From: Lepidodermella squamata
Taxonomy: Eukaryota > Animalia > Gastrotricha
Direction: 5' to 3'
Length of the DNA: 64,000 nt
NCBI GenBank assembly: GCA_047495785.1
Contig: JBLDXI010000031.1
Span: forward strand, 62,001 to 126,000
A program made the position numbers and the translations under genes. Shown here one piece after another: positions 6,961-33,024 of this stretch (position 1 is its first letter; every line of letters begins with the position of its first letter). The notes under the pieces were generated by a model. The model had not been told where the DNA came from, did not search any database, and was given only the letters and a program-made list of their open reading frames with translations.

Positions 6961-7403
6961 ATGTTCGCCAAGATCGCTGTTTCCGTTATACTTATTGGCT
7001 TCGCCATTCATCCTGAGGCGTTGGGCGTATCACTGATAAAGGATGCAAGAGTCGCTAAAGCCCCACCGACTACGACGATGAGTTCTTGTGAGTATTTTGC
7101 TTCCATTAAATATTCCTAATCATTGACTTGGCCAACTTTTCAGCGGACTACCTCAAGTTGAGGAAAGATGTCCTTTCCAGATTCGGAACGATGTCCTTTG
7201 ACGACTGTGAGGGCTCTTACGCTCAGGAGAGCCAAGCGAATGAGGCGCTATGTGGCCAGGCGTGTTCGAGCACTAAGGACTGTTACGCGTTCCGTTTCAA
7301 TCCGAACACCAAGTCGTGCGTCTTTTCAAACAAGTCCAACTGCTTGAAGCGTATTTCCAATCCTCCCCGCTTCACCGGCACCACCTACGTGAAAAAGCTG
7401 TGA
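6961..7403 (+). CDS. Small secreted PAN/apple-domain protein, copy 2; exons 6961-7087 and 7144-7403
   Basis: Mature part identical to copy 1; signal peptide MFAKIAVSVILIGFAIHPEALG differs. Confidence 0.8.
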
Positions 7404-10848: not shown

Positions 10849-13800
10849 CTATTGAAAATCTTCCAAATGGTCGTGCTGCTGTAAGGATGACTGTTGCTGG
10901 CCGGGCGACGGCGCCGTCGTCAACAGGCGCTGGTTCAAATCCGCAAACAACGAATGGCTAGTAACGAGTTCCGGGTGCGTCATCGCCACATTCGTCATGC
11001 CCCAGTTGAAGTACTGCATCAAATTTTTGAAATACCCAGCCAGCGAAGAAAATTTCGCATCACGGACCAGGGCATTCGGCGCGAAATGGCGCATGTTAAA
11101 CGCCTCGTCCGCCACTTTGTACAGCGAGTTCAACTCGCGGACTTTGCCCGGCTCTGTCAGCCCGGGCACGTCCGGGTCGAAGAACAACAGGCCGCACAGG
11201 ATGGCGAACTCGGCGACGGACGGCTGCCACGTGGCCACGCCCGTGCCGGCGTCGCGCAGGTGCTTGGCGCACAGGTCCGTCGGGTCGTTGAACAGGTAGC
11301 GCAGCACCTGGCGCGACTGCTCGTCGTGCAGGTTGAAGTAGTTGACGAAGCCGGTGCGCGGGTCGTAGTCGAGCGACATTTGCGCGAGCAGGATCGGGCA
11401 GAACGCGTTGCCGAACAGATTGAGCCGGTCCGGCATGGACAGCTGCTCGAAGCCGGGCATGAAGCGGATGAAACGCGTTATGGCGACGAGGGCCGGCTCA
11501 AAGTTGGTCGACATGAGCAGCTTCCACGCTTCACCCAGCGACATTTCGAAGCTGAGCCGCGCCGACTGCACGAGTCGAATGTCGCCCAGTGCACTGAAAT
11601 AAGAAACGCATGTGTAAATAATAAGTTGCTGTTTTTTAACCTCGAAAAACGCCGAGACGCGCACACACTCGCTTTGCGTTTGCTTTTCTTCTTTTCGTCG
11701 AGTGCGCGTAATAAAAACGCTACGCACTTTTGCTTGCAATAAAACGCAGGACGCGCAGGTCACGCAATAATTAAAAGCAGAAAGCAAGAGCTTTCTTTTC
11801 TACCCGTTCTAATTATGGCTGGTGGTGGAGACAACACCTCAATTTCAAGCGCGAACGAAATTTAGAGATTTCTGAACATCGCGTTAATTTACAATCAATT
11901 TATGCAATGGGAAAATGTTCATTGATCAGGAAAATAGCGGTCAAGCCAATTCTAGAATGGTGAATATTTGAATTTTTGCAGCGATTTTTACCAGATAAAA
12001 TTAACTCGACTTTTAATTTTAAGGTTTTTTGAAAACCAAAATTCTGATTAATAACAAATGAATCGAAAAGGGAGAATGGTAGTGCTAATTAAATAAAAAA
12101 AAATGAAATAAAAAATTAATGAGTAATCAATTCGTTCTAGCTCTCCTCTCCGCCTTCGCAATGGCCTAATATCCCAGATTATTAAAAACACTTAAGAAAA
12201 TAAATTGAAGCTGAATCTACGCTCGAGGGCAATCGCGCTCGCATGAATCTAGGGCGTGTAAATAGTAGTAATAATTAGCCAAGTCTTACTTTGATGCGTC
12301 GATGGATCGCCGAAGCACGTCGTCGATCAAAAACGACTGGCCGTTGGTCCACAACGCGTTGTCGACCCGCAGCGGCTTTTCAGGCGCGGGCACGCGGTGA
12401 GACGACGCCGGCGGCATCGGAAACGCCGGCATCACAAAGTGCTGCTGCGCCTGGTGCTGTTGCAGCGAAATGCCAGGCGGCGGTTGATTTCGAATGTTAT
12501 TCACCTAGAAAAATAAAGAAAAAAAACTATTGAAAAATCCACCTTAATATTTCGCCTAGCAATTTATATTGGGGCGCGCTACAGCAATATAACGCGACCT
12601 GGGCCGGTAATAAAAAGTGACCTATCAAAATAATTTATTACCGGTGCGAAATGTGCCAAATTTCGAAAATCGAGTAAAGGTTGCGAAGAGGTGTTGCTGC
12701 CACTGGCCGAAGTCGACGGCGCGTCACCGCGCGTCGCCGAGCGATTGTGTGCGCTGAACTGTACCAGTTCTTGGATAAAATTCGACACCTGCGAGTAGTT
12801 GGCCGACGACGGATTGCGCGCGTCGTTGCCCGACGCCGCCGCGGCAATGTTGACCAGCAGTGCTGAGGAAGAGGACGACGACGAACCGGGCGAGTTCATC
12901 GGCTCGTTCGACATGGGCGTTCGCACGTTAGCGGCGGCGTGCGACGACGACGACGGCGAATCGGAATTGGAATCGCCGCCGCTGTTCGACGCCTGCGCCA
13001 GATAATTTGAGCACATTGTTTTCACGTAGGACTTGTACGGCGAGTACGGCTGCGAGAAGCCGCTGTTGAGGCCGTCATTCGACGCCGACGACGACGGCTG
13101 CGGCGAGAGTTTTGCACCCGGCCGCATCGCCACCGGTTTAGTCAGGCCTCGGTACATAGTTGGCGAGGGCATCGAAGAGTTCACTACACAAAAATAAATA
13201 ATTAACACTCCTTAATAAAAAGTGCGGTCCTCGCATTTGCAATCCTCAATGAGCGAAACACGCAATGAGGTCATGACCTAGACAGCTAATTTTTATTACC
13301 TTCGTCGAGTAGTGGGTCCATGTTGAAGCCACCGGGCGGTGTTGGCGAGTCAGAGGTCAAGCTGACTTTACTGCTGCGATGCGCGTTACTTCCACTGGTT
13401 TGCATTGGAATTGGCGACGGCGACGTGAAGCCGTGCTCGAATGCATTGCCCATGTCTGCTGTCGCTACTTGACTGTCAGAAAGTGAAAGCCCAACCGATA
13501 ATGAGTCAGAGTTATCCACAACCGCTATTTAAAACAAAAAAAAATTAAAAATCTTGGAAAAATTTTCTTTGCTTACCTTTCGAGGTATCTTCGTTGCTGG
13601 AACTGATTTTTGATGGTTTCCCTTCCTCCAATTCCTTGTTCTTCTTGTTCTTCGTCCAGCCGCAGCGTTGCTGCCGCCGGTAGACTAAACTGGGTAGAAG
13701 GCGGTTTTCAGTCGCCAGCTGCTGCACACGGGCGCAAGTTTCGAGTTTCCGCTGAATCGAATGCCGCCCGGTTCGCACGCCGTCTATCGACATGCCGGCG

Positions 13801-15575
13801 GCGACACAGGCGTCGTAGCGACACCGCTTACACCGCGCCATGTGATTGTTAGTCGACGACGCTGAGCCCGAAGCGGCGGCTTTCTTCGACTTGGCCGACG
13901 AAGCAGCGCCGCTTTTCTCGCCATCAGCGTCTTTTTTGCACTGGTATGTTTTGTGTTTTGAGAGGGACCGGCGGAAAAAGCCTTTACAACCTTCGCAAGA
14001 CATGACACCGAAATGATAGCCGCTACCTATGAAGTAAAATAAGAATTCTCATTAAAAAAGACATGACCCAATTTTTTAATGGTAGTAATAAAATGTGTCG
14101 CAATGACCTAATTTTTAAAAGTGCGGTCCGCGGTTTTACAAAACGCACACGCGTAATAAAAGTAACAATGAGTAATCTACAGGGAAAAGCGGATGAAAAA
14201 GCAAGAAAAAATCTTACTAGAGGCACCACAGACTTGACATGGAATGAGACGAACATCAACAGGTTGATTACCGCCGCTCGACGACGATGCCCTATGCGCG
14301 GCCAAATCGCCGCCGGCGTCGTCGTCCGACTCGCCACCGCTGCCCGTAGTTGCTTCCAGCTTAATGTTGGGCCGATTTGAGTTGGATGTGACGGAACTGA
14401 GACCAGCGTTCTGCCGCTCGACAATCACGTCGTGGCAGCGCTGAAACCGGCAGTGCCAGCATAACGGGGTGACTTTAGACGTTGCGAGGGTGCTTGAGCT
14501 CGACGTCGGCGTGGGTGAAGTTGCTGCACAGGTACATTTAGCACTAGCCGCCGCATCACTTCCTTTCGATTTGCAGCGCAGGTAAAATTTCTACAAAAAA
14601 ACGGACGGACGTCAAATATTTGAATGAAATTTCTATTTCAATCTATCAAATTTTCACGAGTTACTTTCGACAGAAGATTCTGTCGGAAGGTTAATAATCA
14701 GCTTTTGCTTTAAATTTGAACCAAATTTGGCAGCAAGAAACTATTCAATTTCTCTTATTTTTGACAAATTAAAATGCGTTCAGGGAATTTTCCTAAAAGT
14801 TGAGAATTTCTGTGGGAAAATTAAAAAAAAATTAAAATAAGCGAAATTAAAATCGTCGCCTAAAAATAACGGTGTGCCAGACGGTGTGAAAAAAATCAAT
14901 ATAAATTTATTGCACATGTAGAGAGAGACACGGAAAATTGAGTAAATAAGCCTAGGTGAGGATCCTAGTCCGTGACACGATGTGCCACCCTGTAGTCAGC
15001 TGACGAAACATCCATGGATTTAGGACAGTTCGGTTTGGCAATCTCAATAGCACGTCTTTTTTTTTTAATTTTTCAAATTTCTTAAATAATGAAACAAATT
15101 GAAAAAATCGAGAAACGAAAATTCGGTCAATTTTCTGTGAGTTTGCCGAAAAGTTGCGTATTCCTTAGTAAAATCCTAATTTTTAAGGTGGAATTTTAAA
15201 AAAGCAAAATGTTGCGTTTGATCAGTTTCTAGTTTAGTTTTGCCCTCTAAATAGGACAAAATACAGAAAAATGCCAACCTTGCAAGCGCCGCAAATAACC
15301 GGCAGTCGAGTTGCTGATGCACCGCTGCCGCCGACAGTTAAAAAATTCGCCGAGGTCGACAAGTTGAGCGGCGACGACGATGTTTTCACCGGCGTTGTCG
15401 ACACAACGTCCAAATCGTCGTCGCTTTTCTTCGGCGACACCGACTCGGCGCCGTTCGCCTTGTGGTGCTTCGACGCCTTGAAGCCGCTCGGCGTGCTGCT
15501 GTTCGACGTCGGCGACGCCACGACACGATTGCACACCTGGCAAATCATGCTGACTTCAACCGGCGTCGACGCCAT
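10849..15575 (-). CDS. Nuclear receptor with two DNA-binding domains (2DBD-NR), paralog A; exons 15575-15279, 14590-14218, 14026-13577, 13524-13300, 13183-12642, 12504-12290, 11593-10849
   Basis: DBD1 CQVC...CGACK|KFYLR...CTC...CWHCRFQRC; DBD2 [28 protein letters not shown]...[15 protein letters not shown]; LBD signature [20 protein letters not shown] and [18 protein letters not shown]; all junctions GT-AG and in frame. Confidence 0.9.
13268..13279. promoter_or_regulatory. Perfect palindromic nuclear-receptor response element AGGTCATGACCT (IR0) in intron 4 of paralog A
   Basis: Exact 12-mer read from the sequence. Confidence 0.6.
14064..14114 (-). promoter_or_regulatory. Two ROR/Rev-erb-type extended half-sites (AAATTGGGTCA, AAATTAGGTCA) in intron 2 of paralog A
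   Basis: tgacccaattt at 14064 and tgacctaattt at 14104 on the + strand match WAWNTRGGTCA on the minus strand. Confidence 0.5.
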
Positions 15576-17919
15576 TTTTGTTCTTATCGATAGGTACACA
15601 CAAAAATTTGAATTAATGTAATAAAATTCTAACAATCATCGTCCGCGTCAAATGCACCTATAATAAATAAAACGAATTTAATAAGAGGCCAGATTGTTGC
15701 AAAAGTCTGCCACGAGGTTTGCTGGTCGCGTGTGTAAAAGCAGACAAAGCAGAAAAGTGAAAAACGGGGACAAGGCGACGATTCTATCCTCATGATAAAA
15801 ACGAAGATTCCTAGTCATAACTAGCAAGCCACGCTTGTGTGTATGTAAATGGCAGCAGCACAGAAAAAAATCGAGCTGGCTATGCGTATATAGTATATAG
15901 TAATATGCGTACGAAAGAGGAACACGGCTTGTATTGTAATAATAATAATGATACTACTGCAAAAGCGACATGTAATAAAAATGCGAGTATTAAAGCGCAC
16001 ACATCTCATATTATTATACGTTTTTCTATGAAAAGTACGCAGACACACACACAAATACAAACACACGATAAAATAGAGGCTAGTGCAACTAATAATGCTG
16101 CGAACTAGCACCTGAGTTGACGTAAGTTTGAGAGCCACGCCAGTTAGCTGGCTATTGTAAGGTTTCGCTGTATCGAAGTTCAATTGACGCTAATCTAATC
16201 GTATAGATAGGTACTATTCGAAATTGACTATACACATATGAAAGTAGGTAATATTATCCTATATTCTATGCTGCCGAAATGCAAGAAAAATTTGGAGAAT
16301 ATTTCACATTAATCACACGCTTATAACGTCTTGGTCAAAATGAAAGTAAGAAACAACTAAAAATAGCCGGCCAACTGTTCGAGCTTTAGACATGTACGCG
16401 CATCCATCGGCTAATAAATTATTAACATCGAATTAGTACATCATTGCAACACAGACGTCTACTTTCCCCACCTTTCCGTCTTCTTTATAAATCGATTAAA
16501 AAATTGCACGCTACAACAGAATTTATTATTTTATGGTGTAATATTATTAGGTCCATTAAACGCCAAGGCCCGTCAGAAAAAACCGAAAACTCTGCCGGGT
16601 TCAAGGAAAAAACACACATGAAAACAGCTATCTTGTGTTCTGAGTGAATGCCAAGATAACGCTAAAAAAGCTGCTCTGGATTCTGGACGATGGGGGAAAA
16701 TTGAAATTCCTTCAAAATGATGAAAAAACATCTAGACAGCGGTAAATTTCGGTAATTATTTTGAGAATTTTCTGAGCGAAAATAAGAAAAATTGCGGGCT
16801 GAACGTGATCCAGTTATTTGAAAGGCTCTGAAAAATTGGGAGAATTTTTATTGATGATTCATTACAGACGCTTTGAGAAATAGCAATAACGCAAGCGATA
16901 AATGCGCAAATGAGGGTAGTACATGCACTCTAAAATTAATAATACCTAATTCGTCCTTAAGACAAATGGAATTGGAAAAAAATACCGACAATTTTTCAAG
17001 TGGTCGATGTCGATAATTTTAAAAGTCGGACACGGACAGAGCAAGGCTTCGCTTTTCTAACAGGACAAGGCGTGATGTTCTTCCTGGGAAAGCGTGTCAC
17101 AAAAAAAATTGGAGCACATGATGTAATAATGAGCGGCGCGATTGTCACAGAGCAGCTGAATCGACTCGTTATTCAAATAGTCAATAATATTGTTGTTGTT
17201 TTCTAAGATGCTCATTTTGGACTCGGTATTTTCGGACACCCTTTGAACAAGAATTCCTCCGAAACTACTAGGTATAAACAACGTTCGATAAAACAACAAA
17301 AGATAGCCATGAGTTTCTTCTGTCAAATGACATGTAAAACACGATAAATGTATCAGTCTACGAAGAATGGTTCAACTTATTCATCGGGGCGCTCCAATGT
17401 TGAGAATTTCTCATAGATCAAAATTCATAGTCAAGACGCGCTTGAAATTTTTGAAACTTCATAACTTCGTAACAAAAGCATCGAGTCATTGACGATTCAA
17501 ATCACTAGATATGCAATTGTTTTTTCGTCCCATATAATCTGCTCACAGATTGTTTGATCTGTACTGTAAAAAAAAGTTCGCTATTTAACACTTGGCATTT
17601 AGCACGGCCGGTTATTTAGAATAAAAAATAAATTCTAAATAAATTCTCATTGACTACCTATTCCGTTTTTATGACTTTTCAAGTAAAACTGGCAAAACGG
17701 TAACCTGGCTGACGTATCCTAAGAATTCATCCGGATGAATCTATATTCAAAAAACTAAGGTGATTGAAATTTTCAGCGAAATCAGAACCTGATGCGAACT
17801 ATGCGCCCAGGTGTCTAGTTTTGCATACGGTTGTCCAACTAGTTTCTAATTTTCCTGAAAATTCAAAAATTGGATTCGAGAAAAATTCGGCCGTGAAAGG
17901 GATAAAGAGCGCAAGCAAA

Positions 17920-18545
17920 GGAAATGCACGGAAAAGGGTTCAGAAACTCTAAAATGAGAGACGAAGTACCTGAGAATTTTTAGAAAAATCACGAGAGTAG
18001 CAAATAAGTTTGTCACTTGTTAATGTGATTTTTCGGTTAAATCGCGGATAAAAGATGGAATATTCTCTCGATAGGTTCAATTTAAAACAATTAGTTGAAT
18101 TTCCTACGAAAAGCTGCTAAATTAAAAACCAGTTGTACAACTTCTGTGACACTGTAAATCTAGGAAACTGAAAACGTTTTCACCATTACTTCGATTGCAA
18201 TAGTTGTCCATTAAAATTTTATTGCTAATTTATTTGTGCTAAATTGTCTTTGAATTATTCGAAACTTAAGCATAAAACATTCTTACCGATTTCGGCGTTT
18301 TTGTTTTTGATCGATAATGATGTCCTCCCTAAACGTAGGATTTTTTATTTAAGCTACCTGGCGCCCTAAGCTACGTAGAAAAATTATCGATGTTGGGTTC
18401 CAAGACGGCTGACATGGGAAAAATCACTGATTTTTAAAATCGATACTATGAATCGATATCGGCTCTACAGGCTGAAGTATGAGTTGTAAACTGACCGCTT
18501 ATAGCGCAAAATACGCGCAATACGAAGATCTATCGGTTAGGCTTG
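17920..18545 (+). repeat. Dispersed repeat; related copy at ~21930-22410, partial copy at ~27410-27475
   Basis: Collinear shared blocks aaatgcacggaaaagggttcagaaa, gataaaagatgga, aaaatcgatact, tagcgcaaaata, gatctatcggttag. Confidence 0.8.
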
Positions 18546-20063
18546 ATAGCAAATAAATTTAGACTCTAGTGAAGACGTGAAACTCAAAAATCCATATTCA
18601 GTGGAAATCTAGTGCTGGAGTCTCAAAATTAGTTGCCACACCCTTATTTTATCGAAATATTTTTAGCTGGCGTTTGCTCGGATCTCACAACTGAAATATC
18701 GGATTATGCCAAACTATCTCCACACGATGTCCAGATCTCTTCGAACCGGCCGCATTAAAAGTTGGGTGTAAATCTTTCCACCATCAATTTCAGGTTCTCT
18801 ACCATCAAATTTGAGCTTTCGCCAACGAAACAGAAACCGGCCCGAAAACTGATTTAGTCGAAAGCTATTTCATTTTTAGGCTTGATGGCGAATTTAGGTT
18901 TCGATTGGGTTCGAGGTCCCGAAATTTATGGTAAAAGGCCCATATTTTATGGTATGTATAGTATGAAAGCATTTTCCCGTGAAAATTTCGCTAAATCATG
19001 CGAAAAATGTGTTGGACAATCGATAATAGGGCTGAAATCGAATATCTAATTTGTCTTGTAAAGGAGGTTCGAAGGAAGAATACCAGCCGCCACGCGATTC
19101 GAACCAGACATGCGATTCGAACTTTTCCCATAAAAAAAATCGCGGTGTGCAAGTGATCTGATTTTAGCAGCAATTAAGTAAACATGAAACTAGAATTGAT
19201 CTGGCTCGAGCTTTTTACTACGAGCAATGCATTCGATGACGCTCGAGTCATAGCAGTGTTAACCCAGCTAACTGGACACGTGGCGTTTTCAATATTATAG
19301 TAGCAAGCTTACATATAGGTATGCTCTATTATTTTGTTTTATATGCTAATCACACCGCGTGTGTTTTATTGCCACAGGCTATAACATAGCAGCGCTTAGT
19401 TGTGACTGAGAAAGCGTGTTCTAAGCGGAGCTAAAAATACTTGATTGCATTTCACACCCAAATCGGCTGGTGTAACGCCGTGAAATACTCGAGATAATAT
19501 TTTGATCTTCCGCCATAATAAAATAAGAAGAAAAAATAGAGAAAATAAATCGAAAAATTCTCTTATCGAATTTGCAGCTCCAGATTTTAATGGGTTTTTC
19601 TCATTTTTGAATGACATACTGGCAAAAAATCGAGAAGGACGAGGGAACCCATTTTCACTCCTGAATTTGCTCCCTAATTGGATGATAATCTGGTGGCATG
19701 AGTCATCGTGCAAAACCAGCATGCAAAAAAAAATTCTAAGAAATTAAAAAAAAATTGGATGAAAAAAGACGCGGAAAATTTCTCAATATTCTTCTTCATT
19801 TCTTTGTTCTGTTATTTTTTCGTAAGCGCCGAAACAAAAATATATAGATACATAGTATATTTCCAATACACGTGTCTCCAATAAATGAAGTTGATCAATA
19901 ACATAACGTTACATTTTTTTCCACGAATTTTACATTGGAAACAATGATTATTTTTTCATCATTTCTCACAAATATATCAGCAAAAAAAGAGAGACGGCTC
20001 AAAAATACATCTTCAACAATAAGTAAACCGAGTGTTTTCCATCCAGATCAGTCACTTCTACTA

Positions 20064-23000
20064 TTAGCTGTTGTTGATCAATGGCGGGTGAAAATTCGAC
20101 GCCGACGACGATGGGTAATTGTTGTCGTCGATCAACGGCTCGCCTTCGACGCGGAACATGTTCGGGTGATTGCGCAATTTCCGCGTCAAATATTTGTGCA
20201 TTTCCGCCCACAACGGGTGCACGTTGACAAAATCCGGCCTTTCGGCTTCAATCGATTTCATAACCACGCCCAGCCATTGGTACATCGGCTTCATGTACCG
20301 AACGAGTGATGAGAAGCGTTGAGGCGCTGACATTAATTGCTGCGATGAGTTGGACGACGACGACGAAGACGGATCGGACGAGGACGATGATGAGCCTAAA
20401 TTACGCTGCGCGTTGAAAGTTTCGTCCGCCATGCGGTACGCTTCCATGATTTGCCGCACTTTCTCCGGCTCTTGCAGATCAGGCACGGACGGATCGAAAA
20501 ACAGCAGGCCGCAAAACAGCGAAAATTCGAGCTGAAAAACGAAGAAACAATAAATAAAAAGTCCGCCTTAAAATAATAATGTGCGCAATAAAAAAGATGC
20601 GAGAATGCGAGGACCTCAAAACGCACTAGGTCAAAAGATGCGAGAGCAACAGCAAGCAATAAAAACGTAAAAGCGAATTATTATTACCGTGTTCGGCTTC
20701 CACGTTGAGATTGTTAGCCCGGCGTCGTTCATTTGCCGTTCGAGCATGTCGCCGGGGCCACACAGCAGAAATTTGAGCATTTCACGCGCTTCAGGCGTCG
20801 ACTCACAGAAGAAATTTGGCGTGCGTGACGTCATGTCGTAGGACAGCGACAACTGCGCAACCAAGATAGGGAAATACGCCTGCAAGAGAGCAACAATATT
20901 TCTTCAAAAATTCTTGACGAAGAATTGAAAAAAACAAAATTCGGAAAAATTGCAGATAAATTTGAAGAAAAAAAAATAAAATATTACCTGAGTAAATAAA
21001 ACAACGCGATCGGCTTGGCAAAGTTCGCGAAAACCGGGCAGTAGCCGAACAAAGGAGGATACAGAGTTGACGAAAGAATCGAACAGGTGGTGCATCACAG
21101 ACGTCCACGCTTCGAGCGGGTCCATGTCGAAGGTTAGGTGCAACTCGGGCACTTCCGTTATCCTCGTCAGGTACGCGTTCGATTCGAGCAGCCGCTGTGC
21201 AACTGATTGGACAGAATCGACGCGTAGAAATTGCAGAGCCGACGGGGGAGGCATGGCGAGCGGCATTTGGATGCCTGAAACAAAGAAATCAAATATTTTA
21301 GACAAAGAGCACAAAAAAGAACACACAAATTCAGAAAATTTCACGCACCAAAAAATAGAACAAATCTTTATAATTTTAAAAGTTTCAATTGCTGCAACCT
21401 TTATTTTCAGTTTTGAACATCGCCATTCATCAAAATAAGGCTTATTAAGGGAATAAGGCAATTAAGCCGAAGAGTCGAAACTTAGCCTTGTAAATGACTA
21501 AATTTCGAAAATTTCGAGACGAAAATCCAAAAAGCTGCTGTCAATTTATACACTGCCCTAAATTTTCCGATTCAAAACTAAATTTTAGTTAATATTAGCA
21601 GGAGAAGAAAAACGAGAAGAAAACAGATTATTAGTTAAATATGTGGTCTTCTGATTTTAGAAATCGGAAGCGCCCGGAAACTATTTTTTTCTGAGTTTGG
21701 TATTTCATGAAACGGGTCTAAATAGTATTTACACCAAAATCGCACTACATTTTTCTGATTTTTCGCGATTTCGGCGATTTCTTTTCTCCCCCGATATTGA
21801 TGCGCCCATAACCCGGAAATTTTTGCTTCAGCTACCTGGCACCCTGAACAAGGAGGAAATACATATTGATGGCTTTCCAGGCTGATGATATCGGAAATAC
21901 AGCGTGTCCCATAAGTAACGCATGCAAAGAAAATGCACGGAAAAGGGTTCAGAAATTTTAAAATGAGAGACGAAGTCACACCTTGTGGCCAGAAAATATT
22001 TAGAAAAATTCAAAATATCATAAGAATAGTAATTAAGTATGCGTCACTTTCAATGGGATTAAAAAATTCCGGAGAAATTAGGTACAACCCGGTAAAATAC
22101 CGAAAATTACCGAACCAGTTACCATCGGGGTTTTCCGGGATTTCTCCGGTAAATTTGGTATTTCTTCGGTTAAATCGCCGATAAAAGATGGACATTTTCT
22201 CGGTAGGTTTATTTTAATAAAATTAATGAATTTCCTACTAAAATTTGCCAAATTAATAAATAGTTGCGCAAATTCTGGGACACTCTGTATCACTGATTCG
22301 TAAAATCGATACTTGAAATCGATATCGGCTCCGCAGACTAAATTAGAAGTCGTAAACAGACCGCCAATAGCGCAAAATATGCGTAAAAGAGAGATCTATC
22401 GGTTAGACATAACTGTAAAAAATGTTCCTTCTAGGAAAGACGAGAAACTCGAAAATCGAAAAAATCTAGAGCTCGTACTCTAAATTTAAACAAAATTTCA
22501 CAGATTTTTTAAAAATATTACGATTTTTTATTTTTAAAATAAAATGATTGCAAACGCATTGTATTACCTGGATTTTGGTATGGCATGTGGTGAAGCGGAT
22601 GCTGTTGCTGCTGTTGGCTGTGAAGCTGATGGCTCGTACCCGGCTGAGACATCGGGTTGTTGCTACCAGAAGCCGTAGCGGCCTGCAGGTGGTTACTGAA
22701 CGCCGTCGTAAATTGCAACTGCCCACCGAAATTCGCCGTCGACGTCATTGTAGCCGTGCCAATACTGCTACTACTCGTACCCCCACCGCCCATTGTCATC
22801 GACGACCGCCACGGCGCAACCTGTTGATCAACAGGCGCTGTTATTGTTGTCGAGGTCAGTTCTTGCTGTAGAGAATCAGCTTTCAGCCGTTTGCTACTAC
22901 CCCCAAACCCAGCCAACAACTCGGCGCTGTTGTTCGACGGCGAGTCCAACCCGTTGAATGTCAACCCGCCGCGGCCTGACAACGGCGTGCCAAGGGCGCT

Positions 23001-26000
23001 CGGCGACGCCAGGGTGACTACAGACGGCGGTTGCGATATCGTCAGCGACAGCGTCGACGGGCTCGCGTCCTCGCCGTCGTCGTCAACGTCGATCAGCGCG
23101 TCTTCGTCTACCGAATCGTCGTCGTCTGTCTCGGGCGGCACGCTGTGAAGCAGTTGTTGCTGGTGATGCTGTTGGTTCTGCTGGTTTTGCTGCTGGTGGC
23201 TGCTGTTGTAGCTGGATGACGCGCCTTCGGGTGATCGCATTTCTTCCTTGAATGCAGGCGTCGTTCCGTCGTCCTGACTCATCGACATTTCATCCATGTT
23301 GCGCCGGCCTAGAAAAATGAGAAAATTATTAGCATTTTCTATTTCACAACCGAAATTCGGGATATTTTGGGACTAAACTGTATTTGAGAATTTTAAATTA
23401 ATCAGAAATTCAGAAATTTGTATTTCCGATTTATCTGAAAATTTTGGCGGTTTCTACGAATTTTACCTGATTTTTGCGTTAATCAGAATTAATTATGGTT
23501 AATTTAGGACGCTCACTTGCATATTCGAAAAAACGGTACCTACTAATTTTCCGCTTCATCGTTGACTTGTTTTCAGCAAATTAGTCGGAAAGAAATACTG
23601 ATGGGGAAGAAATGTAATCACTGGGATAAATTGTGTTTCTTCACTCTCTGCCCGGGCTCCTCGTGCGATGACCATCCGCAACACAGGAAATGGTCATAAT
23701 CAAATAATGGCTCAAGCTGACCCCCGTCAAGCTTAAGCCCTTCGTAAATCGGGACACGGCTGTAATTAATTTACGACAGTGCCACGCCATCGTTGTTATT
23801 TCTGATTCCGATGTGTTACGATCGTTTTTTAAGCCGAGAATTATTACTTTGATCGATAACAAAATCGCAAAAATCGCAAAAATAGATTTATCAAAATCAT
23901 TAGACTTGGTAAAATTATTTTGAAAAATTCAATATTATCAGCCGTTTAATAGCAATTTTTTCAAATCGAAATAGGAAAATTCAGCCAAATTAAATCATAT
24001 CCAGATAATTCGCAACTTTTTCCGAGTTCCTGGTTCATGTCCATTTCGAATAAATGAGACCATTTTAAGGTTCATAATTCGCAATTTAGAGCTTGAGCTG
24101 TTGAAGGAGTGTCGCCGCATGTCCGGGGATGGGACATTCTGGATTTCTCCAACTCTCTTCAGCCAGGTATACACGTAACACGCCGTTACCGAGGGCGCCC
24201 AGTTCCCTGTTGCTTACGCCCTTCTCCCCTGTAAGGACGGGCCGATCTACGACAAGTTGTTTCACAATCTGCGGCTGTTAGTACCTGACTTGTACTTCGA
24301 TCAAATTACGCTCGACTTCGAGCCAGCCGCAATTGCAGCAATAGCAACAACGTGGCCGAATGCGATGATTTTGGCGTGCTTATTCCATCTTTGTCAGGTT
24401 GTGTAAAAAATTAAAATTAACGCCTGTTGTTAAATGTATTATTATTTTTTAGGCCATTTATCGCCGTGTTGTTGCCTACGGGTTGCAAGGCTTATATTAT
24501 TCCGAAGTAACTTCAAATCATCGGAACAATAATTACTTTCATCGTACCATTTTTATCTGAAACCATCGGAACCATCGGAATTAATATTTTGCTATTAAAA
24601 ATGCATTATTTCATCGGAAAAGTTTCATTTCAATAACAGTATATTCCGACACTTTAAGATACTGATTTCCGACGAATAATTATAAAGCTGTTTCAAAATT
24701 CAAACCCCGGCGCTTATTTCGAGTTGTTAGCCCTCCGTTTTTTCCTACTTCGACAGAAACAGAGCTGGTGAGTTTGCCACGACCTCGACCTCGGCTACAG
24801 ACAGTTTTGTCAACAGATGTCGATGTTAACCGACTACGACCACCACTTGGTTCAGAAACCACAGGTTCAGCTTGGGCTGGAACAAAAGCCGTACTACGAC
24901 CACACCCGCGACCACGCATAGGCTCAGCAACCAACGCTTTCAGAAACCCAGTGATTGATGAGATCGTCGGTTTTCGAGAGAAATGCAGTGAGGGCGGGAC
25001 AGTCCTATCAGTTCCTTCAGCCTTTAGCCGATTACTCAGCGATTCATTTGCACTATTAGTGCGTCATTATTATAAAATCAGAGGCGCCTTCATACCAACC
25101 CGACAGCGGACCATAGATATAAATTGGCTCGAATTACTTAATGAAGTCTTCGTAAACGTAAGGCGTTAGTAGCATTGGGAATAGCCCTAAGCTCATCCTT
25201 CGTCGATAGCCATAACACTAGGTATTGCAAAGAGAAATGAATTAATTATCGTCTGAAACCGTCGGAAATCGCCTCGTTGTAATATTTCGCCTGTTGGACG
25301 ACGGCTTCGTGGACCGCGTACCAAAGCATAATTCCACCCGCTGTACCAGCAAATTACTGACTGAAACCATCGGAAAAACAAATAAAGCACTTACTTCTGA
25401 ACCGTTTTCGGCAGTTAACTCATATGAAAGTAACACATATAGCCTTAAATCTCAAGCACGAAACACGGGATAATAGCCGCTTTGATGTAACCCCCTTGGA
25501 TGACTTTATTGTGGATCGCATCGACTTGAAAGCAATTTGAAAAGAAAATTGCAAGAAATCACCACGGTCCAAAAAGGCTTTTCTCCTTTTTCGCGGCTGC
25601 TCGTCAAATTCATAATTGATCACTTATAAGGCGACTTATCAACGATTTCGAGGTCTTCCTATCCCCATCAGCGGGTTCGAAAAAGAATTGACCGGCTCCT
25701 ACCTTCTGCCTCATCATATCGTTAGCGGCGCGCCAAAACAACCACTTTACTATTTATAGATTTTATATGGATAGTACGATCGAGAGTAGAAAAAAATCAG
25801 TGCTCAAATGGCCTATCGTACTTTATCATTACGTTCGGCGACTTCAAGTACGATCGAATGAATCATCTAAGTGGTTGTTTTGGCGCGCCGCTAACGATAT
25901 GAGGCGTAATTTCGCAAAAATGCCATTTATTATCAATAAAGCAATCTTGAAATATGACCACTAAACCCATAGAACCCCTTTCCGATGAATTAATGGCGTG

Positions 26001-29000
26001 TTCCGATGAAGTAATCGTATATTCCGATAGAATAATGCACGTTTTCGATTCCGATGGTTTAATGCGAAATTTTCTGAAAAATTGTATTTCCGATGGTTTA
26101 ATGAAAAAGAGTACGATGAAAGTTTTTATTGTTCCGATGGAAAGATGTGGGTCCATTATTCCAATGTCGTTGTTAAAAGGTGGTTTAAAATATCTGGCGG
26201 CGCTTGCCTTTTTGCCGTTAGACCGAGTATCGAGCTCCTTCTACGCACTCGACGCGCAAATTGCGAAGATCGCGGCGGAACACGAGGCGTCCGGTTTGAC
26301 CCGCCTATATACGTACTTTCAGGAAACGTACATCGGCGTGTACCATCACGGCGAGCTGACCCATCGGCCGCGCTTCGATCTGGCTATATGGACTTGCTTT
26401 TCCCGCGCTTTGGCTGGCCTGCCCCTCACGGACAACGAGGCCGAAGTGGAGCACAAAGTTTTTTAGGACTTCGTAGAAAAACCCCACCCCTCGCCATACG
26501 AGCTTCTCTCCTTCTTTTTACAAGAACAGGACCTATGTGAGAGCCGTCTTATGGCTCGCGCGGCTGGCGAGAAATATAAGCGGTCCTACCCAGCCAAAGT
26601 GAAAATTTGCTCGTCGCTTGATACTGAATCACTAAATGATTTTAAATCTTTGGAAGCGCACCTTGTGACAATTGTTTTACACTTTGAAATGAAAAAAAGA
26701 CAAAAATCGGAACATTCCCTTAGAATTGTTGACTAATTCATTTATGCTTTGTTTTGTATAAAATTTATGACTCGCTGTTTTGTTGTTTTGCTATTTTGCA
26801 TATTTGCTGTTATGTCGCTAACCCATAATGATATTAATAAATCGTCGCTGTTTTGACGCAATATGGATTAATAGCTATTACGTCGGCTGCTGTTATGCGC
26901 AAATTACATTTTCGCTGTCATGTCGGTTTCGCTGTTTTCGGTATTTGCTGTTCCGGCGGTCTACCCAATTTAGAGCTGTCCAAACCAAAATATTATCAAC
27001 AATCTGCATCTCGGGCACGTCAGAATCGAAGCTCTGACTATTGGTCTTGGGTCGACGCTACAGTCACTGAACCATCAGGTTCAAGATAGGTCCCAATAAG
27101 ATAGACTTAGTTCGATTTTTACCTGAAATTTTCCTAAAAAGAAATCCGATGCCTGGTGATTTTTTTCAAAAATTGAAATCAACTCAGATCACACCTAAAT
27201 TTTCATCCCGAAAGAGTAACAACACATAGTTTTCAATAACGAAATTTTTTCTAAAATTCTTCCTTCAAAGTATTGAATTTCATGTGATTTATCGTTAGCA
27301 AATTAATTCTAAAGTGTGCCCCTTAAGTAACATCTCGTGGCCCAAAAATTCGAAACGCTTCCAAATGCCATCGGAAAATTAAACAATTATGGGAATAAAT
27401 AAATCCGAAGAAATTTGGTCCAACCGGGCAAAATTACCGAAAATTACCGAAATAGTTACCGTTGGGTTTCCGATAAATTGTTGTATTCGATGAAATCACG
27501 GAAGAAAATTGGGTGATGCTCAAATTTTCAATTAAAAAATTATTGTTAAGACTTTTTGCAAAATTAGGAAACAGGGACAGCGATTTTTTCCTGGCAGCAA
27601 TTTTTCTATTTTTTCCAATAATTACCTGGAATAACCGATGATTTAGCACAGCCGCGTAGAATCGGCGACGTCAACAGTTTGTTCTCGGCGGCGAGGCGTT
27701 TCACATAGGCCGACGTTTCAATTTTGCGCTGCATCGAATGCCGCCCCGTCTGCACGGCCGACAGTGACATGCCGGCGGCGATGCACGCGTCGTAGCGGCA
27801 CTTTTTGCACTTCATCTGGTGCTCGCGAGTCGTACGCTCGGTAACACTCGCGTCCGGCTTCACGGCTAACAACTTGCATTTGTACGGCGTTTTTTTAGAT
27901 ATCGACCGGCGGAAAAAGCCCTTACAGCCTTCGCAAGATATCACACCGAAGTGATAGCCACTACCTGGAGAAAAATTAACAACATTTAAATGTTGAAAAA
28001 TTTTAAAAAAAATTTTAAAATCATAATTTAACCGAGTATTCAAAACGCAAAAATTTGAAGTATTTTCCCTGCATTTTTTTGATTTTTTCATGCGGTCATC
28101 TTGGATGAAAAATAAGTTATCAAAGTATGTACAGCCTAAAAATAGGCAATCAAGTACCAACAATTTCGCTAAATTGATACTCGAGACTCGAGTACTTTAG
28201 ATTAGAAATCGAGAAAATGTCCAATGTCCTAAAAGCTTCAGGTTACGAGATAAAAACGAGCCGAAATTCGATCTGTAGGTAACGCGTGGGCAAAACTTTG
28301 CCTCGAAAATAGATGTTGTACTGGTTCGATAGGACACGGATGAAATTTTTCCGAAAAATCAACGAAAAAGCCGGACATTTTTTTGACGGGTTTAAATCTC
28401 AAAGATTAGCACCAAAAATATTTTGAAATTGATCACGATATACGTCAAGCTGGGTATTTGAAATTTTCAATATACTCAATGCAATATTCTCAATGCAATA
28501 TATGAGAATGCAATATACTCAAAGTTTTGGAAAAGAACTTTCGAACAAAAATGTCTCGAATTTTAATTGCCGCTTCACAATTATATTCCGCCTGAATTCG
28601 GAAATTTTTTCGGATTTATTTTACAATTTCACTATTTTATGCTGCGTTTGTTAGGTATTTTTCTTTTTATCTTTCTTAATTTCGCATTTCAAGTTTTCAA
28701 TTTTGGCTGAAATTTCATGGTCCACTTGCTAGCTTCCAGCTGTTTTAAATAACGCTAATAACCGTCTACATCATTATCAAATGTTGTCGCGACACTATAT
28801 TATAATGCCACTCAGTACCTGCGGATGAATTATATTGAAGCATCATCGCTTAACACGGCATTACGAGCAGCTTATCAAACAATGGCGCAAGTTTACAAAC
28901 GCGACTAATGATGACTTGTTGTCCGCGCCGAGAGCGGACAGTTTCAACATGATAGCCATCTTACATTGCGTTGAAATGAAGAGAGCCGAGTGAAAAATTT

Positions 29001-31093
29001 ACTCAAGGCATGATCGATAACAATGAATAAGAGAGACAACAAGAAGAGCCTATTCAGGTTAAAGACAAATTTAGATCTTAAAATCGATGAAATTTTGTTG
29101 AATAATTAAAGGATGAAACAATGAGAAAAGGAATCAGATAATATTACAAATTCCCTTTTATTTTACAGCTATTCCTAAAAATTCATCTGGAGACGCGATT
29201 TTCGAGTGGAAAACGATTCGTAGTTTTTTAGAATATTTCTTTCGAAAGCAGTAATATTAGCGTCACATGACTAAAATCGGAGTCATTCATTTGAAAATAA
29301 TAAAAATTCGCCCTGAGTAGGTAGGATGAGAACGTAAAATAAAATGTTTTCTAGAAGTAAAAATTTTCTAAAAAATTTTAAAAAATTTAAAAATTCTCGC
29401 CTGCAAAATGAAAATAGCTAAAAATTTTAGAGAACCAAAAAAAATCCAAAAATCATTTTTCAATTTCAATTTTCGACTGTAGAAAAAAACTTACTAGAAA
29501 CGCCGCAGATTTCGCACGGAATCATGCGAACGTTGATGCGCTCGCCATTGGGCGCGTGGACGCCCGGCGTCGGCGCCAAATCGCCGCCGTCGTCCTCGCC
29601 ATTCGACGACTCATTATCGTTATTGTTATTATTATTATTATTCGAATTCAACGACATGCGGCCCAATTGCGACGAAGTGTTGTTGTGGCTACTTGCCGCA
29701 GCATTATTACAACTAGTACCAGCCGCCCCGCTATTATCACTGTTTTTATCACCAGCACCGCCGCCTAGCTGCGACACGTCAATGCCCGAGTCATCGAGGC
29801 TCTTCGAGTCGATCATCGCCGCGTGGCAGCGACGCGCCCGGCACGCCCGGCACATGTGTTTCGTCGACAGTTTTCGAGCCCGGCCGTCGGCGTTGCGGTC
29901 CGTCGCCGGGTTCGGCTGCAGCCGCACCTCAGGGCACGAACATTTCTCCGTGAAAATGCTCGAATTCGACGCCTTCGAACGCGAGTAAAATTTCTGAAAA
30001 AAAAACAAAAAATAAATTACCGCAAAAATTGTAATCAAAAACTAAAATGAAAATGTTATGAAAAAAATTATTGCAAGTTTGCATACTTAATAGCAAAAAA
30101 ATGTCCACTTCCAGTAAAAATTGGTTCCGCTAGGGCTGTGACCCATTTTTTTTCTCTCAACAACACGAAACACGGAATTTATGTCAGCCGGATTAAATCC
30201 GTCTCAAAACTTATTGTTAAGGGAGAAATGGCGATTTCTCCTAAATTTGGAGCGACATCAATCACGGAATTGAAACAAGCGTGATTTCGCGGCATCACTT
30301 CAACAATTAAGATTAATTAAATATTGATCTCAACTTCAGATTTCGCCTTCTAGATGCAGGTCTGAAGGCGTTTGCACCAGACGCATATATTGATCGTTTG
30401 TCTCATTAATTAATCAAACGTGCTATTTTTAGCTAGAATTTTTCCCAAACGTATTAAATCGATAGCGACGAATAAAAGGAACGGGCGAGAAAAATACCCG
30501 TGATGATCGATGATTTGAATAACAACGGCTAGAAAGGGACATGGGTCGCCTATTAAATGGCCATCTTTAAGACGCAAAACCCGAGGGAGATTCTAGCGAA
30601 ATTTTGAACTTGGAAAAAAAACAAGAAAGTGTGAAGAAAAAACTTCAGAATTGTCCAATTCCAGGAGAGAAATGAAAAACTATCTCAAAAGCTAATCCTA
30701 AAAAACTGGCTGCTTTTTCTGAATAAAATTCGAATAAAAACTGGAAATTATGAATTGAACTAGATGCTGAAGGTACTTTTTATGCCACCAAGAGACAGAG
30801 AAAAAATATTAAAAATATTCTTTGAATAATCAACACACCTTGCAAGCGCCACAGATAGCATTCTTGCCGCGATTTCGCCGCGCAGAAGCCGACAAGTCGT
30901 CGCTAGTTCCGGTTTCCAGCGTAATCAGCGACTCGCCGCCGACGATTTTTGCAACCGGCGGTAGTTTAAACTCGCGACAGCACACCAAGCAAACGGCTTT
31001 TTCGCCAGAACCGCCGCTGCTCATTTTCCGACCGCTGCTGCTCGAAGTATCGAAAGCACCGCCTTGGTTAGAATCGCCATCGTCAGAATCCAT
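20064..31093 (-). CDS. Nuclear receptor with two DNA-binding domains (2DBD-NR), paralog B; exons 31093-30839, 29993-29495, 27964-27626, 23308-22568, 21275-20988, 20879-20688, 20531-20064
   Basis: DBD1 CLVC...CGACK|KFYSR...CSC...CRACRARRC; DBD2 [28 protein letters not shown]...CKKCRYDACIAAGMS; [41 protein letters not shown] and AF2-like HPLWAEM; first two introns at the same positions as in paralog A. Confidence 0.9.
24504..26154. mobile_element. Nested non-autonomous DNA element with long imperfect TIRs and an ATTATTCC target-site duplication
   Basis: ATTATTCC at 24496-24503 and 26155-26162; subterminal inverted repeats catcggaacaataa..actttcatcgtac with repeated CATCGGAA motifs; removing it rejoins the MULE reading frame. 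Confidence 0.75.
25714..25902. repeat. Perfect 34-bp inverted repeat with a 121-bp spacer
   Basis: tcatatcgttagcggcgcgccaaaacaaccactt (25714-25747) and its reverse complement (25869-25902). Confidence 0.9.
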
Positions 31094-33024
31094 GTTGTTG
31101 TAACGAGAATTTCGTTTGAGAAAACCTCAGCGTGACATGAATGAACCAGCAGATGATATTAAAGCCTACGTATAACACGATTACAAACTTCTTGACATCG
31201 ATTTTTGTTGAAATTTTAGACGACGATGCCACGTTTGGGATAAGCTACAGCTAATTAAATCGCGTTTTACGTGATAAAAATTAACCGAGGTATGATTATT
31301 TCAAACTTGGCCAGTTTATAATAACTACAAGTTCTTACAAAGCTCTTCAGGGTCCCAAAAATAGAGCAGAGTTTTATTGTGAAAAAGCGTGTTTATCACT
31401 CCGTGGCTTGAGCTGTATGTATGTGTGTGTGGCTGGCTGGAGAGAAATAACGCAAAAACGACGAGCGAACGCACGATGAAAATGAAAGGCTTTTGCACCG
31501 CGCAACTTGCCTAGTACTCACAGTCTTATTAATGGCGCATAATAATAGAAAATGTACGTCGCCGTTGGTTATTCGCGTGATAAGCAGCACTGTATTGCTT
31601 ATACTACACGCATACAGTACAAAAACGCACTCGGATTTTATTGAACGTATTTTGCTCGTCAAGTGAAAACGGCTGTCTGTAACTGAGAAATTGCGCTAAA
31701 TTAAGGCGGATTTTTTAATTGATCGCGCAACTGTGTTGAAATTAGGTGTGTATGTGTGCTTGTCGTTAAGATAATAAAAAGCTTGACACTTAGAGCTGGG
31801 TGAAATATTTGGGACAGTTTTAAAAGCGTAGGAAGACGTCACCGCCATTTCACTAATTTTCGGAGAAATGTGTTCAATAGATGTGATTGAAAAATCGGAA
31901 ATGCGTGGAAAAAAACGTGTGCCTAAATTTGTGCCACGTGGATTTTCAGTTTATGACGACCTGAAACACGCCAACTTGTCACTAATGAGATAGGTCACTG
32001 TGATGCGAAGTCTGCTTGAGTGATTGATTATTACGCAATTCCGTCTGATTGTAAAAACAATGGGCGGGCGAACAGAAGTGGTGGTGAACTCAGAAAATGA
32101 GGCCCAATCTGCGTCCCAAAGACAAAAGACTAAGAGAGACACAAATTCTGTATCAAGTGTGCGGCCTAACAAGACTTACGTCTTTATAAAAAAATTCTGC
32201 TGCGCTTTTTAGTTAGCAATTGTAGGACTCCGCCTACTTTAAGACTAAGAACCTTAAAGAGGAACACGTTTGAGGTCATTTTTTTTTAACAGCGATTGTA
32301 TCAGGACGACTTGATCGCGAGCGGAGATTCAAGGAACTGAAGGCGAGAGCTGTCATTTGAAATTATTCTCGCGTCTACTTAACGCTGAATTAACAGAAAA
32401 AAACCACTTCGGTACTTGCAATACTAATTAGTCTGTCAACGCCTTGCTTAGCGGTGAATTAAGCTCCCAAATAGTGGGACAAGTAAAACTTCGTCAATTC
32501 TTCTAAAAAAAATATTCCAAATTCATTAAAACACAAAAAATTGTCTCATTTTCCCGGCGTTAAAAAGACACAAAAGCTAAAACCTAGCTAAATAAATTTT
32601 TCAATGAATTTTCTATATTATAGCTGGTCGACAGAACATATGAAGAGCTGGACGCTATAACGGTGAAAATTCAGCTGCCTCCTTGGCAAACAACAGGATG
32701 AAATGGAGCCAATAGAGCAACTCCAAAAAGCGGCAGTAAATAAGTTTTTATAAAATTGAAAATAATTAAAAAATTGTTGTAAATACACAGGTAAGACCCA
32801 AACTTGACCCCAACAAAATTGAAAAAACTTCTGTGACTGCATTAGTGCCCCGGCTAAGCCCTGCCGCCTCATCACCGACATTTTCCCTAAAAACTAATGT
32901 GAGCCTGTGGTTTCCTGTATTCCTTTAGGTGCCCTTGCGATCCTCGCCCTACTGAGCCCCTCCCGAGCCAGCCCGATTAATATGTAAGCTTACCGTTAAT
33001 GAATTGATCTCTGCCTTGCCTTAC

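Follow-up and report, generated by a model that had tools for sequence, protein, structure and literature searches.

Introduction

The DNA-binding domain (DBD) of nuclear receptors (NRs) is among the most rigidly spaced domains found in animals, and the receptors that carry two such domains (2DBD-NRs, or NR7) are a rare class that is functionally almost unstudied. Here, we describe a tandem pair of 2DBD-NR genes, named A and B, with a strongly remodeled first DBD. They were found in a stretch of 64,000 nucleotides from the gastrotrich Lepidodermella squamata (GenBank assembly GCA_047495785.1, contig JBLDXI010000031.1, positions 62,001 to 126,000 of the forward strand), hereafter called the window and numbered from its first letter. 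The class was defined on receptors from Schistosoma, which have CEACKK in the first domain (DBD1) and CEGCKG in the second (DBD2), and Sm2DBD-alpha forms homodimers mediated by the ligand-binding domain (LBD) and no heterodimer with RXR (PMC1810520). In the catalogue published in 2023, most members have the arrangement C-X2-C-X13-C-X2-C plus C-X5-C-X9-C-X2-C in both DBDs, and 17–22 amino acids (aa) lie between the two domains (PMC10497141).

The window genes fit this class by architecture and phylogeny, and depart from it by motif and spacing. When compared with 2DBD-NRA (NR7A; Wu et al. 2007, PMC1810520; Wu & LoVerde 2023, PMC10497141), genes A and B have the same order of A/B region, DBD1, DBD2, hinge, and LBD, and also share the CQVC start (CLVC in gene B) and the helix x-A-C-K-K-F-F/Y-x-R of DBD1, as well as SSG-x-HFG and [10 protein letters not shown] in DBD2. 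However, the finger-1 loop of DBD1 is 42–79 aa long instead of 13, the P-box has GACKK instead of EACKK, the D-box is C-x-C instead of C-x5-C, the spacer that follows is 22–27 aa instead of 9, the linker between both domains is 65–103 aa instead of 17–22, and DBD2 is without Cys6. The GACKK P-box, the C-x-C D-box, and the long finger-1 loop are all absent from the 2023 catalogue of 2DBD-NRs and its alignment tables (PMC10497141), and the layout of A and B was not found in the later literature searched. The preliminary description of this DNA is not contradicted in these sources by an earlier account of the same architecture.

Results

Two co-oriented genes encode receptors with an extra upstream DBD

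Both genes are on the minus strand, and tblastn gave no further nuclear-receptor sequence in the region. Assembly by script of the spliced open reading frames (ORFs) generated complete reading frames of 948 aa for gene A and 926 aa for gene B, each made of seven exons with GT-AG introns throughout, and both models were free of stops and frameshifts. The exons are distributed as follows:

Gene A, exon 1: 15279..15575, minus strand; start codon, CQVC knuckle, 79-aa Ser/Thr/Pro-rich finger-1 loop, and C-G-A-C-K
Gene A, exon 2: 14218..14590, minus strand; K-F-Y-L-R-C, CTC, 22-aa spacer, CWHC-RFQRC, 65-aa linker, and the DBD2 knuckle CQVC
Gene A, exon 3: 13577..14026, minus strand; remainder of DBD2 ([10 protein letters not shown]) and C-terminal extension
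Gene A, exons 4–7: 13524-13300, 13183-12642, 12504-12290, and 11593-10849, minus strand; hinge, LBD, and stop codon
Gene B, exon 1: 30839..31093, minus strand; start codon, CLVC knuckle, 42-aa finger-1 loop, and C-G-A-C-K (start of the P-box helix of DBD1)
Gene B, exon 2: 29495..29993, minus strand; K-F-Y-S-R, CSC, 27-aa spacer, and CRAC-RARRC, i.e., finger 2 of DBD1
Gene B, exon 2, remainder: 29495..29993, minus strand; 103-aa low-complexity linker, then the DBD2 knuckle CEIC
Gene B, exon 3: 27626..27964, minus strand; remainder of DBD2 ([16 protein letters not shown], finger 2 without Cys6) and C-terminal extension
Gene B, exons 4–7: 23308-22568, 21274-20988, 20879-20688, and 20531-20064, minus strand; hinge, LBD, and stop codon

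Two NR-type DBD modules and one LBD are found within a single spliced protein in both cases, and this is the 2DBD-NR (NR7) architecture. The Pfam zf-C4 profile matched exon 3 of gene B at 5e-17 and that of gene A at 1.3e-13, the latter in two stretches. The LBD gave a weak match of Pfam Hormone_recep to the last exon of gene A (0.0026), and when the gene A LBD was used as the query in tblastn, exons 4–7 of gene B were matched at 4.5e-32.

The joint between exons 1 and 2 is in phase 0 and flanked by GT..AG in both A (15279/14590) and B (30839/29993), and brings together C-G-A-C-K and K-F-Y. It had been proposed that this splice yields an additional upstream DBD in both paralogs, with all the core cysteines and R-x3-C, and the spliced proteins show exactly that. 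In gene A, DBD1 is composed of CQVC, x79, CGAC, x19, CTC, x22, and CWHC-RFQRC, followed by the 65-aa linker and DBD2 ([13 protein letters not shown]); in gene B, it is composed of CLVC, x42, CGAC, x18, CSC, x27, and CRAC-RARRC, followed by the 103-aa linker and the same DBD2 motif as in A. The loops of 79 and 42 aa, the P-box CGACKK, the C-x-C motif (CTC or CSC), and the spacer of 22–27 aa, all of them given in the preliminary description, were recovered when measured again on these proteins. One surplus Cys was found in DBD1 of gene B (CLVCC), and another one in the KFY-x-R-C stretch of gene A and its ortholog.

With regard to the features that define the class, the spacing rule C-X2-C-X13-C-X2-C / C-X5-C-X9-C-X2-C is broken in DBD1 (x79 or x42, C-x-C, and x22 or x27). 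The combination of CEACKK and CEGCKG is not maintained either: DBD2 has CEGCKG in A and B, and DBD1 has CGACKK in A, B, and the ortholog on the metagenome contig L001 described below. Moreover, the distance between both DBDs, 65 aa in A, 103 aa in B, and 25–58 aa in the relatives, is outside the range of 17–22 aa.

Splicing of gene B and selection on its first exons

Two public runs that contain the gene B stretch were compared over positions 27500–31500. One of them, X1, was guessed to be RNA, and the other one, X2, was DNA-like; the joints reported here are those of contigs assembled from a single study. In X1, the splice 30839/29993, which had been suggested as a check, was present: a contig joined 29993 to 30839 and skipped 845 bases limited by CT..AC on the plus strand, i.e., GT..AG on the minus strand, with 45 letters on the shorter side. 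The contig over exon 1 spanned 30857–31154, and another one of 2273 letters carried a joint equivalent to 27964/29495 and had a loose end at 27625 that fits the start of exon 4. The depth of X1 over gene B was 31–70 in the exons, with similar values in exons 1–3, and 0–46 in the introns, mostly under 20. In X2, introns and exons were evenly covered, and the exon 1–2 and exon 2–3 joints were not present. Both gene B splices, exon 1–2 and exon 2–3, are supported by these data. Two odd joints in X2, 27966-29575 and 27986-28082, had short sides (24 and 40 letters, respectively) and did not fit splice sites, and are probably assembly or paralog artefacts.

Among the differences listed between the window and both runs, the 13 located in exons were all synonymous, five of them in exon 1 (two within the 42-aa loop), one in exon 2, and seven in exon 3. 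The gene B introns contained many substitutions and indels between the window and the runs. Since the exon differences among those listed are synonymous while the introns diverge, this comparison indicates that purifying selection acts on the reading frame of exons 1 and 2.

Relatives of A and B conserve the remodeled DBD1

When the DBD2 exon was used as the query in an exhaustive profile search, one close protein, P0001 (E 1e-33), was found, followed by a few at 1e-18 to 1e-21, and the family members come solely from ENA metagenome assemblies. On L001, the contig that encodes P0001, the public gene call (5540-7336) opens at a Met right after DBD1. Upstream of it, one exon ends in L-L-C-G-A-C-K, and the next one begins with K-F-Y-T-R-C-K, contains C-T-C, and has C-W-Y-C-R-Y-Q-R-C just before the annotated start; this exon start and these motifs are the same as in gene A exon 2, and the position of the first knuckle is occupied by a run of N. 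A second relative, P0006 (L002-4), holds both modules in one open frame, with CQVC, x45, CEACKK, CAC, x25, and CRWC-RFRRC. Its ORF crosses an in-frame GT..AG intron of 48 nt placed between C-Q and V-C (L002 2660-2710), and the stored protein has 16 spurious residues. The third one, P0018 (L005), has CQVC, x19, C-E-A-C-R joined to K-F-Y, CKC, x12, and CRFC-RFQQC, and its public gene call (L005 2957-4822) likewise starts past or inside DBD1.

The three relatives have the C-x-C motif and the nine DBD1 cysteines in common with A and B, and the expectation that these cysteines would be conserved in orthologs was borne out in other organisms. Within the family, the finger-1 loop forms a series of 19, 42, 45, and 79 aa, and the spacers go from 12 to 27 aa, with the ligands fixed. 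A phase-0 intron straight after C-x-A-C-K/R is common to A, B, L001, and L005. The likeness of the three relatives to A and B covers the remodeled DBD1 plan, the C-x-C motif, the intron position, and the LBD; in contrast to A and B, P0006 and L005 still have the P-box Glu (CEACKK and CEACRK, respectively) and Cys6 of DBD2, and L005 has a far shorter loop and spacer (19 and 12 aa, respectively). In the public data, these relatives are annotated as single-DBD proteins or as an unspliced ORF. Since the public gene calls begin after or inside DBD1, such databases probably contain more two-DBD receptors than are counted.

No DBD1-type motif was found within the 2.6 kb upstream of P0003, a close DBD2 relative (L006 1-2600), and the sequence of this locus suggests that one-DBD derivatives of the two-DBD lineage exist in the related metagenome organism, and hence that the DBD1 module can be lost. 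A word-indexed search with residues 45-200 of P0006, which contain DBD1, matched only P0006 itself. The search with P0001 retrieved no named family member; beyond P0006, the matches were solely generic NR1 or canonical 2DBD receptors found via DBD2.

Over exons 1 and 2, A and B were 35–37% identical with many gaps, and outside the motifs they could not be aligned; when the finger-2 segment of gene A (C3 to C9) was used as a tblastn query, the segment of gene B was not found at E<=10. Despite this divergence beyond tblastn detection, 12 of the 49 ungapped columns were invariant in the C3-to-C9 alignment of five sequences, arguing that the DBD1 pattern is not due to chance. Seven of these columns are the expected Cys, and the other five comprise A, K, F, and R in the recognition helix plus the Arg that follows Cys8. 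All eight zinc-ligand Cys of DBD1 were conserved in the alignment. In the profile alignments, the second Cys of C-x-C corresponds to the canonical Cys5, and the first one to a conserved aromatic residue two positions upstream. The alternative, a Cys6 shifted four residues towards Cys5, would be just as good judging by the spacing in L005, where Cys4 and the first Cys of C-x-C are separated by 15 aa, and Cys5 and Cys7 by 14 versus 15. Under either reading, finger 2 of DBD1 retains four cysteines.

In DBD2 of A and B, finger 1 is normal, and 35 aa (A) or 22 aa (B) separate Cys5 from Cys7, without Cys6. The canonical Cys6 is missing from finger 2 in A (13800-13945), B (27790-27880), and the L001 ortholog (about 5790-5860), and in each of the three, a His lies five residues upstream of Cys7 (H-M-A-R-C, H-Q-M-K-C, and H-Q-S-K-C, respectively). 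It is retained in the outgroup relatives P0006 and L005, with a D-box of 9-10 residues.

Phylogeny and age of the duplication

A tree was built from DBD2 through the C-terminus of 35 proteins (389 columns), using IQ-TREE with a site mixture model. The family was supported at 100/100 and nested in a 98/93 clade with 12 canonical 2DBD-NRs from bivalve, flatworm, hemichordate, rotifer, and acanthocephalan sources, and the order inside this clade was not resolved by the tree. ROR/HR3, Rev-erb/E75, EcR/FXR, and PXR/CAR were placed outside. An NR1 single-DBD receptor of the ROR/Rev-erb/E75 type, which has the P-box of DBD2 in common, is excluded by the two DBD modules and by the placement outside the NR1 groups sampled. 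Gene A and the L001 gene were sisters (98/93), and gene B was outside them (100/97), so the tandem duplication is older than the split of both organisms. The preliminary description had proposed a divergent, locally duplicated 2DBD-NR subfamily; the subfamily stands, with DBD2 and the LBD grouping with 2DBD-NRs and not with NR1, and the duplication has to be regarded as old, not recent. A and B are thus very probably old tandem paralogs of a divergent two-DBD receptor lineage (NR7 / 2DBD-NR).

Likeness to other receptors

A short D-box and a long spacer such as those in DBD1 of A and B were also found in bivalve receptors (P0054, P0090, P0110, and P0134; the cluster includes Ruditapes philippinarum XP_060590430.1, 'oxysterols receptor LXR-alpha-like'), whose finger 2 is C-x-C-x17-C-x2-C. 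Unlike A and B, these proteins carry only one DBD, whose P-box is CEACKG and whose finger 1 is normal. They formed a long branch outside the 2DBD clade in the tree, and for this reason the resemblance to DBD1 looks convergent, as a recurrent solution.

The first position of the P-box can also be compared with that of the steroid receptors GR, AR, PR, and MR, which have C-G-S-C-K-V, i.e., Gly in place of Glu; this Gly is reportedly the subject of the 1989 work by Umesono-Evans, Mader, and Danielsen. Gly comes first in both cases, with A-C-K-K as the remainder in A and B and S-C-K-V in steroid receptors; there is no phylogenetic relation between them, and the rest of the DBD1 domain differs in detail from the steroid receptor DBD.

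DBD1 is a homologue of the nuclear-receptor DBD

The prediction that a zf-C4 profile would overlook DBD1 held. Pfam zf-C4 (PF00105) gave no match at E<=10 on the exon 1 and exon 2 pieces of A and B, and on DBD1 of P0006, it reached 14.8–15.6 bits, about 15 and under the gathering cut-off of 21.1, in the register of profile positions 16-68. As a control, a canonical 2DBD DBD1 scored 76 bits with the same profile. We then used our own hidden Markov model (HMM), generated from 184 canonical DBDs, on five family proteins that included the spliced A and B. This model found DBD1 in register in all of them, with 23.4 bits in L005, 14.3 in L001, 7.6 in A, 7.4 in P0006, and -0.9 in B; in L005, the match covered the full length of the canonical DBD model. 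When the family DBD1 was compared by hhalign with the canonical DBD1 of 2DBD receptors, the probability was 97.4% (E 1.5e-11, 35% identity over 55 columns); with canonical DBD2, it was 96.2% (E 2.5e-9), and with all DBDs, 97.0%. From the profile–profile comparison, it is clear that DBD1 is a homologue of the NR DBD.

A model of P0006 residues 40-200 was generated with AlphaFold (AF2) from an alignment of 11 rows that included canonical DBD1 rows, and it is hence not independent of them. The P-box and post-Cys8 stretches had a predicted local distance difference test (pLDDT) value of 67–80 and were predicted to be helical at the positions of helices 1 and 3 of the NR DBD, and the loops, with pLDDT <50, were predicted to be disordered. 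The predicted structure is compatible with the homology but weak.

Other features of the window

Intron 3 of gene B (23309-27625) is 4.3 kb long, by far the longest in either gene, and contains plus-strand ORFs of 133–170 aa (24768-25169 and 25954-26540) with no Pfam match; these are possibly a degraded mobile element. The neighboring genes include an intronless one for a lysosomal alpha-mannosidase of 941 aa (37238-40063). The best full-length named homologues of this protein are at most about 42% identical, and a metagenome protein reaches 56%; its best named matches, at about 40%, are from molluscs, brachiopods, nemerteans, annelids, arthropods, and rotifers. These low values indicate that the lineage of the animal has been poorly sampled. 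A kringle-domain protein (43421-44065), an RPAP1-like gene (49570-52751), and a Y-family (IMS) DNA polymerase with at least two exons (55188-56267 and 60348-60752) were also found.

Discussion

We propose that the upstream module of A and B derived from a canonical first DBD (CQVC-x13-CEACKKFF-x-R ... C-x5-C-x9-C-x2-C-R-x2-K-C). It retains the Cys of both zinc sites (four plus four Cys and the trailing Cys), the helix C-G/E-A-C-K-K-F-Y-x-R, and the Arg after Cys8, and the changes are concentrated in the parts that normally contact the DNA backbone and the partner DBD: the finger-1 hairpin has turned into a putatively disordered loop of 42–79 aa, the D-box into C-x-C with a spacer of 22–27 aa, and the connection to DBD2 into a tether of 65–103 aa. 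DBD1 may fold around two zinc ions and serve as an accessory module that contacts DNA from a loose tether. Given that Gly replaces the P-box Glu, as it does in steroid receptors, a change in the half-site preference of DBD1 would be expected. Its dimer geometry would be altered as well. The main recognition of half-sites, of the NR1 type, would fall to DBD2 with its CEGCKG, and dimerisation to the LBD.

This reading of A and B as old 2DBD paralogs, with DBD1 as an accessory zinc-folded DNA-contact module, is in our opinion somewhat better than an even prospect, and its parts do not have the same strength. That DBD1 is folded and binds zinc is likely, since the ligands, the residues of helix 1, and the intron have persisted through an old duplication and also occur in other organisms, and the listed polymorphism is only synonymous. 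That it continues to contact DNA is close to evenly balanced, and the argument for it is that, apart from the Cys, conservation falls on the residues that read DNA.

The main rival explanation is that DBD1 is a zinc-stabilised fold that does not read DNA, and acts as a module for protein–protein (or RNA) interaction or for regulation, displaying disordered Ser/Thr-rich loops. We find this possible but doubtful. It would account for the replacement of the finger-1 hairpin by loops of 19–79 aa with no conserved sequence, the D-boxes rebuilt in both DBDs, the loss of the P-box Glu in the clade of A, B, and L001, and the long low-complexity linker that accompanies loops predicted to be disordered. 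However, the residues found to be invariant besides the Cys are precisely those of the DNA-reading helix (K, F, and R), together with the Arg after Cys8, and their invariance is hard to explain if the contact with DNA was given up before the split of A and B; moreover, Gly at the first position of the P-box is functional in steroid receptors. It is far less probable that DBD1 is a decaying, functionless relic, whose cysteines persist by shared ancestry or by a generic structural need of the N-terminus. The failure of the Pfam profile to recognise it, the lack of alignment between A and B outside the motifs, and the P0003 locus, with no DBD1 motifs in the 2.6 kb upstream and indicating that the module is losable, go in that direction, but the full set of nine Cys, the residues of helix 1, and the position of the intron have survived an old duplication and are shared by at least three other loci, the six differences in exons 1 and 2 of gene B are all synonymous among the differences listed, and no stops or frameshifts are present in the gene models. 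We give the least credit, and very little of it, to an annotation artefact, by which exon 1 would be non-coding or part of a different transcript, and the true products of both genes would be ordinary receptors with one DBD. Although the public gene calls of the orthologs P0001 and P0018 begin after DBD1 and gene A has no read support, this explanation is contradicted for gene B by the exact GT-AG joints between exons 1 and 2 and exons 2 and 3 in X1, with similar depth in exons 1–3, and it does not agree with the conservation of the exon 1/2 architecture in L001 and L005, or with the presence of both modules in one open frame in P0006.

A number of observations weigh against the accessory DNA-contact module. 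Zinc and DNA binding by DBD1 are inferred, and two elements of the canonical domain are missing: the finger-1 hairpin that contacts the backbone (SG-H-Y/C-G) is gone from DBD1, and A, B, and L001 no longer have the P-box Glu. The structural data add little: the model of P0006 DBD1 has a mean pLDDT of 54.5; NR DBDs were 36 of the 37 top rows in Foldseek, with non-significant E values (>=0.3); VIA-align placed NR DBDs amid unrelated helical proteins, with Z<=3.3; these structural matches were partly forced by the canonical rows of the input alignment; and a profile search of PDB sequences was marginal, with the SF-1 DBD alone at E 0.033. On the side of expression and selection, X1 is RNA by guess only, the RNA evidence is limited to gene B, and there are 17 differences beyond those listed.

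A bolder variant of the proposal is that DBD1 represents a new type of module, in which the NR zinc core displays long disordered loops inside both fingers and, along with the Gly P-box and the tether of 65–103 aa, would make a second, independently positioned contact with DNA (or RNA or protein), with a specificity unlike that of any described NR. We consider this unlikely; if true, with the D-boxes rebuilt in both DBDs, it would be a geometry of DNA recognition unseen in the superfamily.

The implications concern both the class and the domain. Annotation is affected, as DBD1 escapes domain profiles and gene callers, and in phyla with little sampling, the number of two-DBD receptors is probably underestimated. 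L005, P0006, and then A and B form a graded series, and thereby provide natural constructs for tests of loop tolerance. This lineage shows that finger 1 of the first DBD can accommodate 6 to 66 additional residues, and that the domain can relocate a zinc ligand of finger 2, lose the P-box Glu, and still be under selection. This bears on the purpose of the extra DBD and on how much of the NR DBD serves zinc-dependent folding as opposed to contacts with DNA and the dimer partner.

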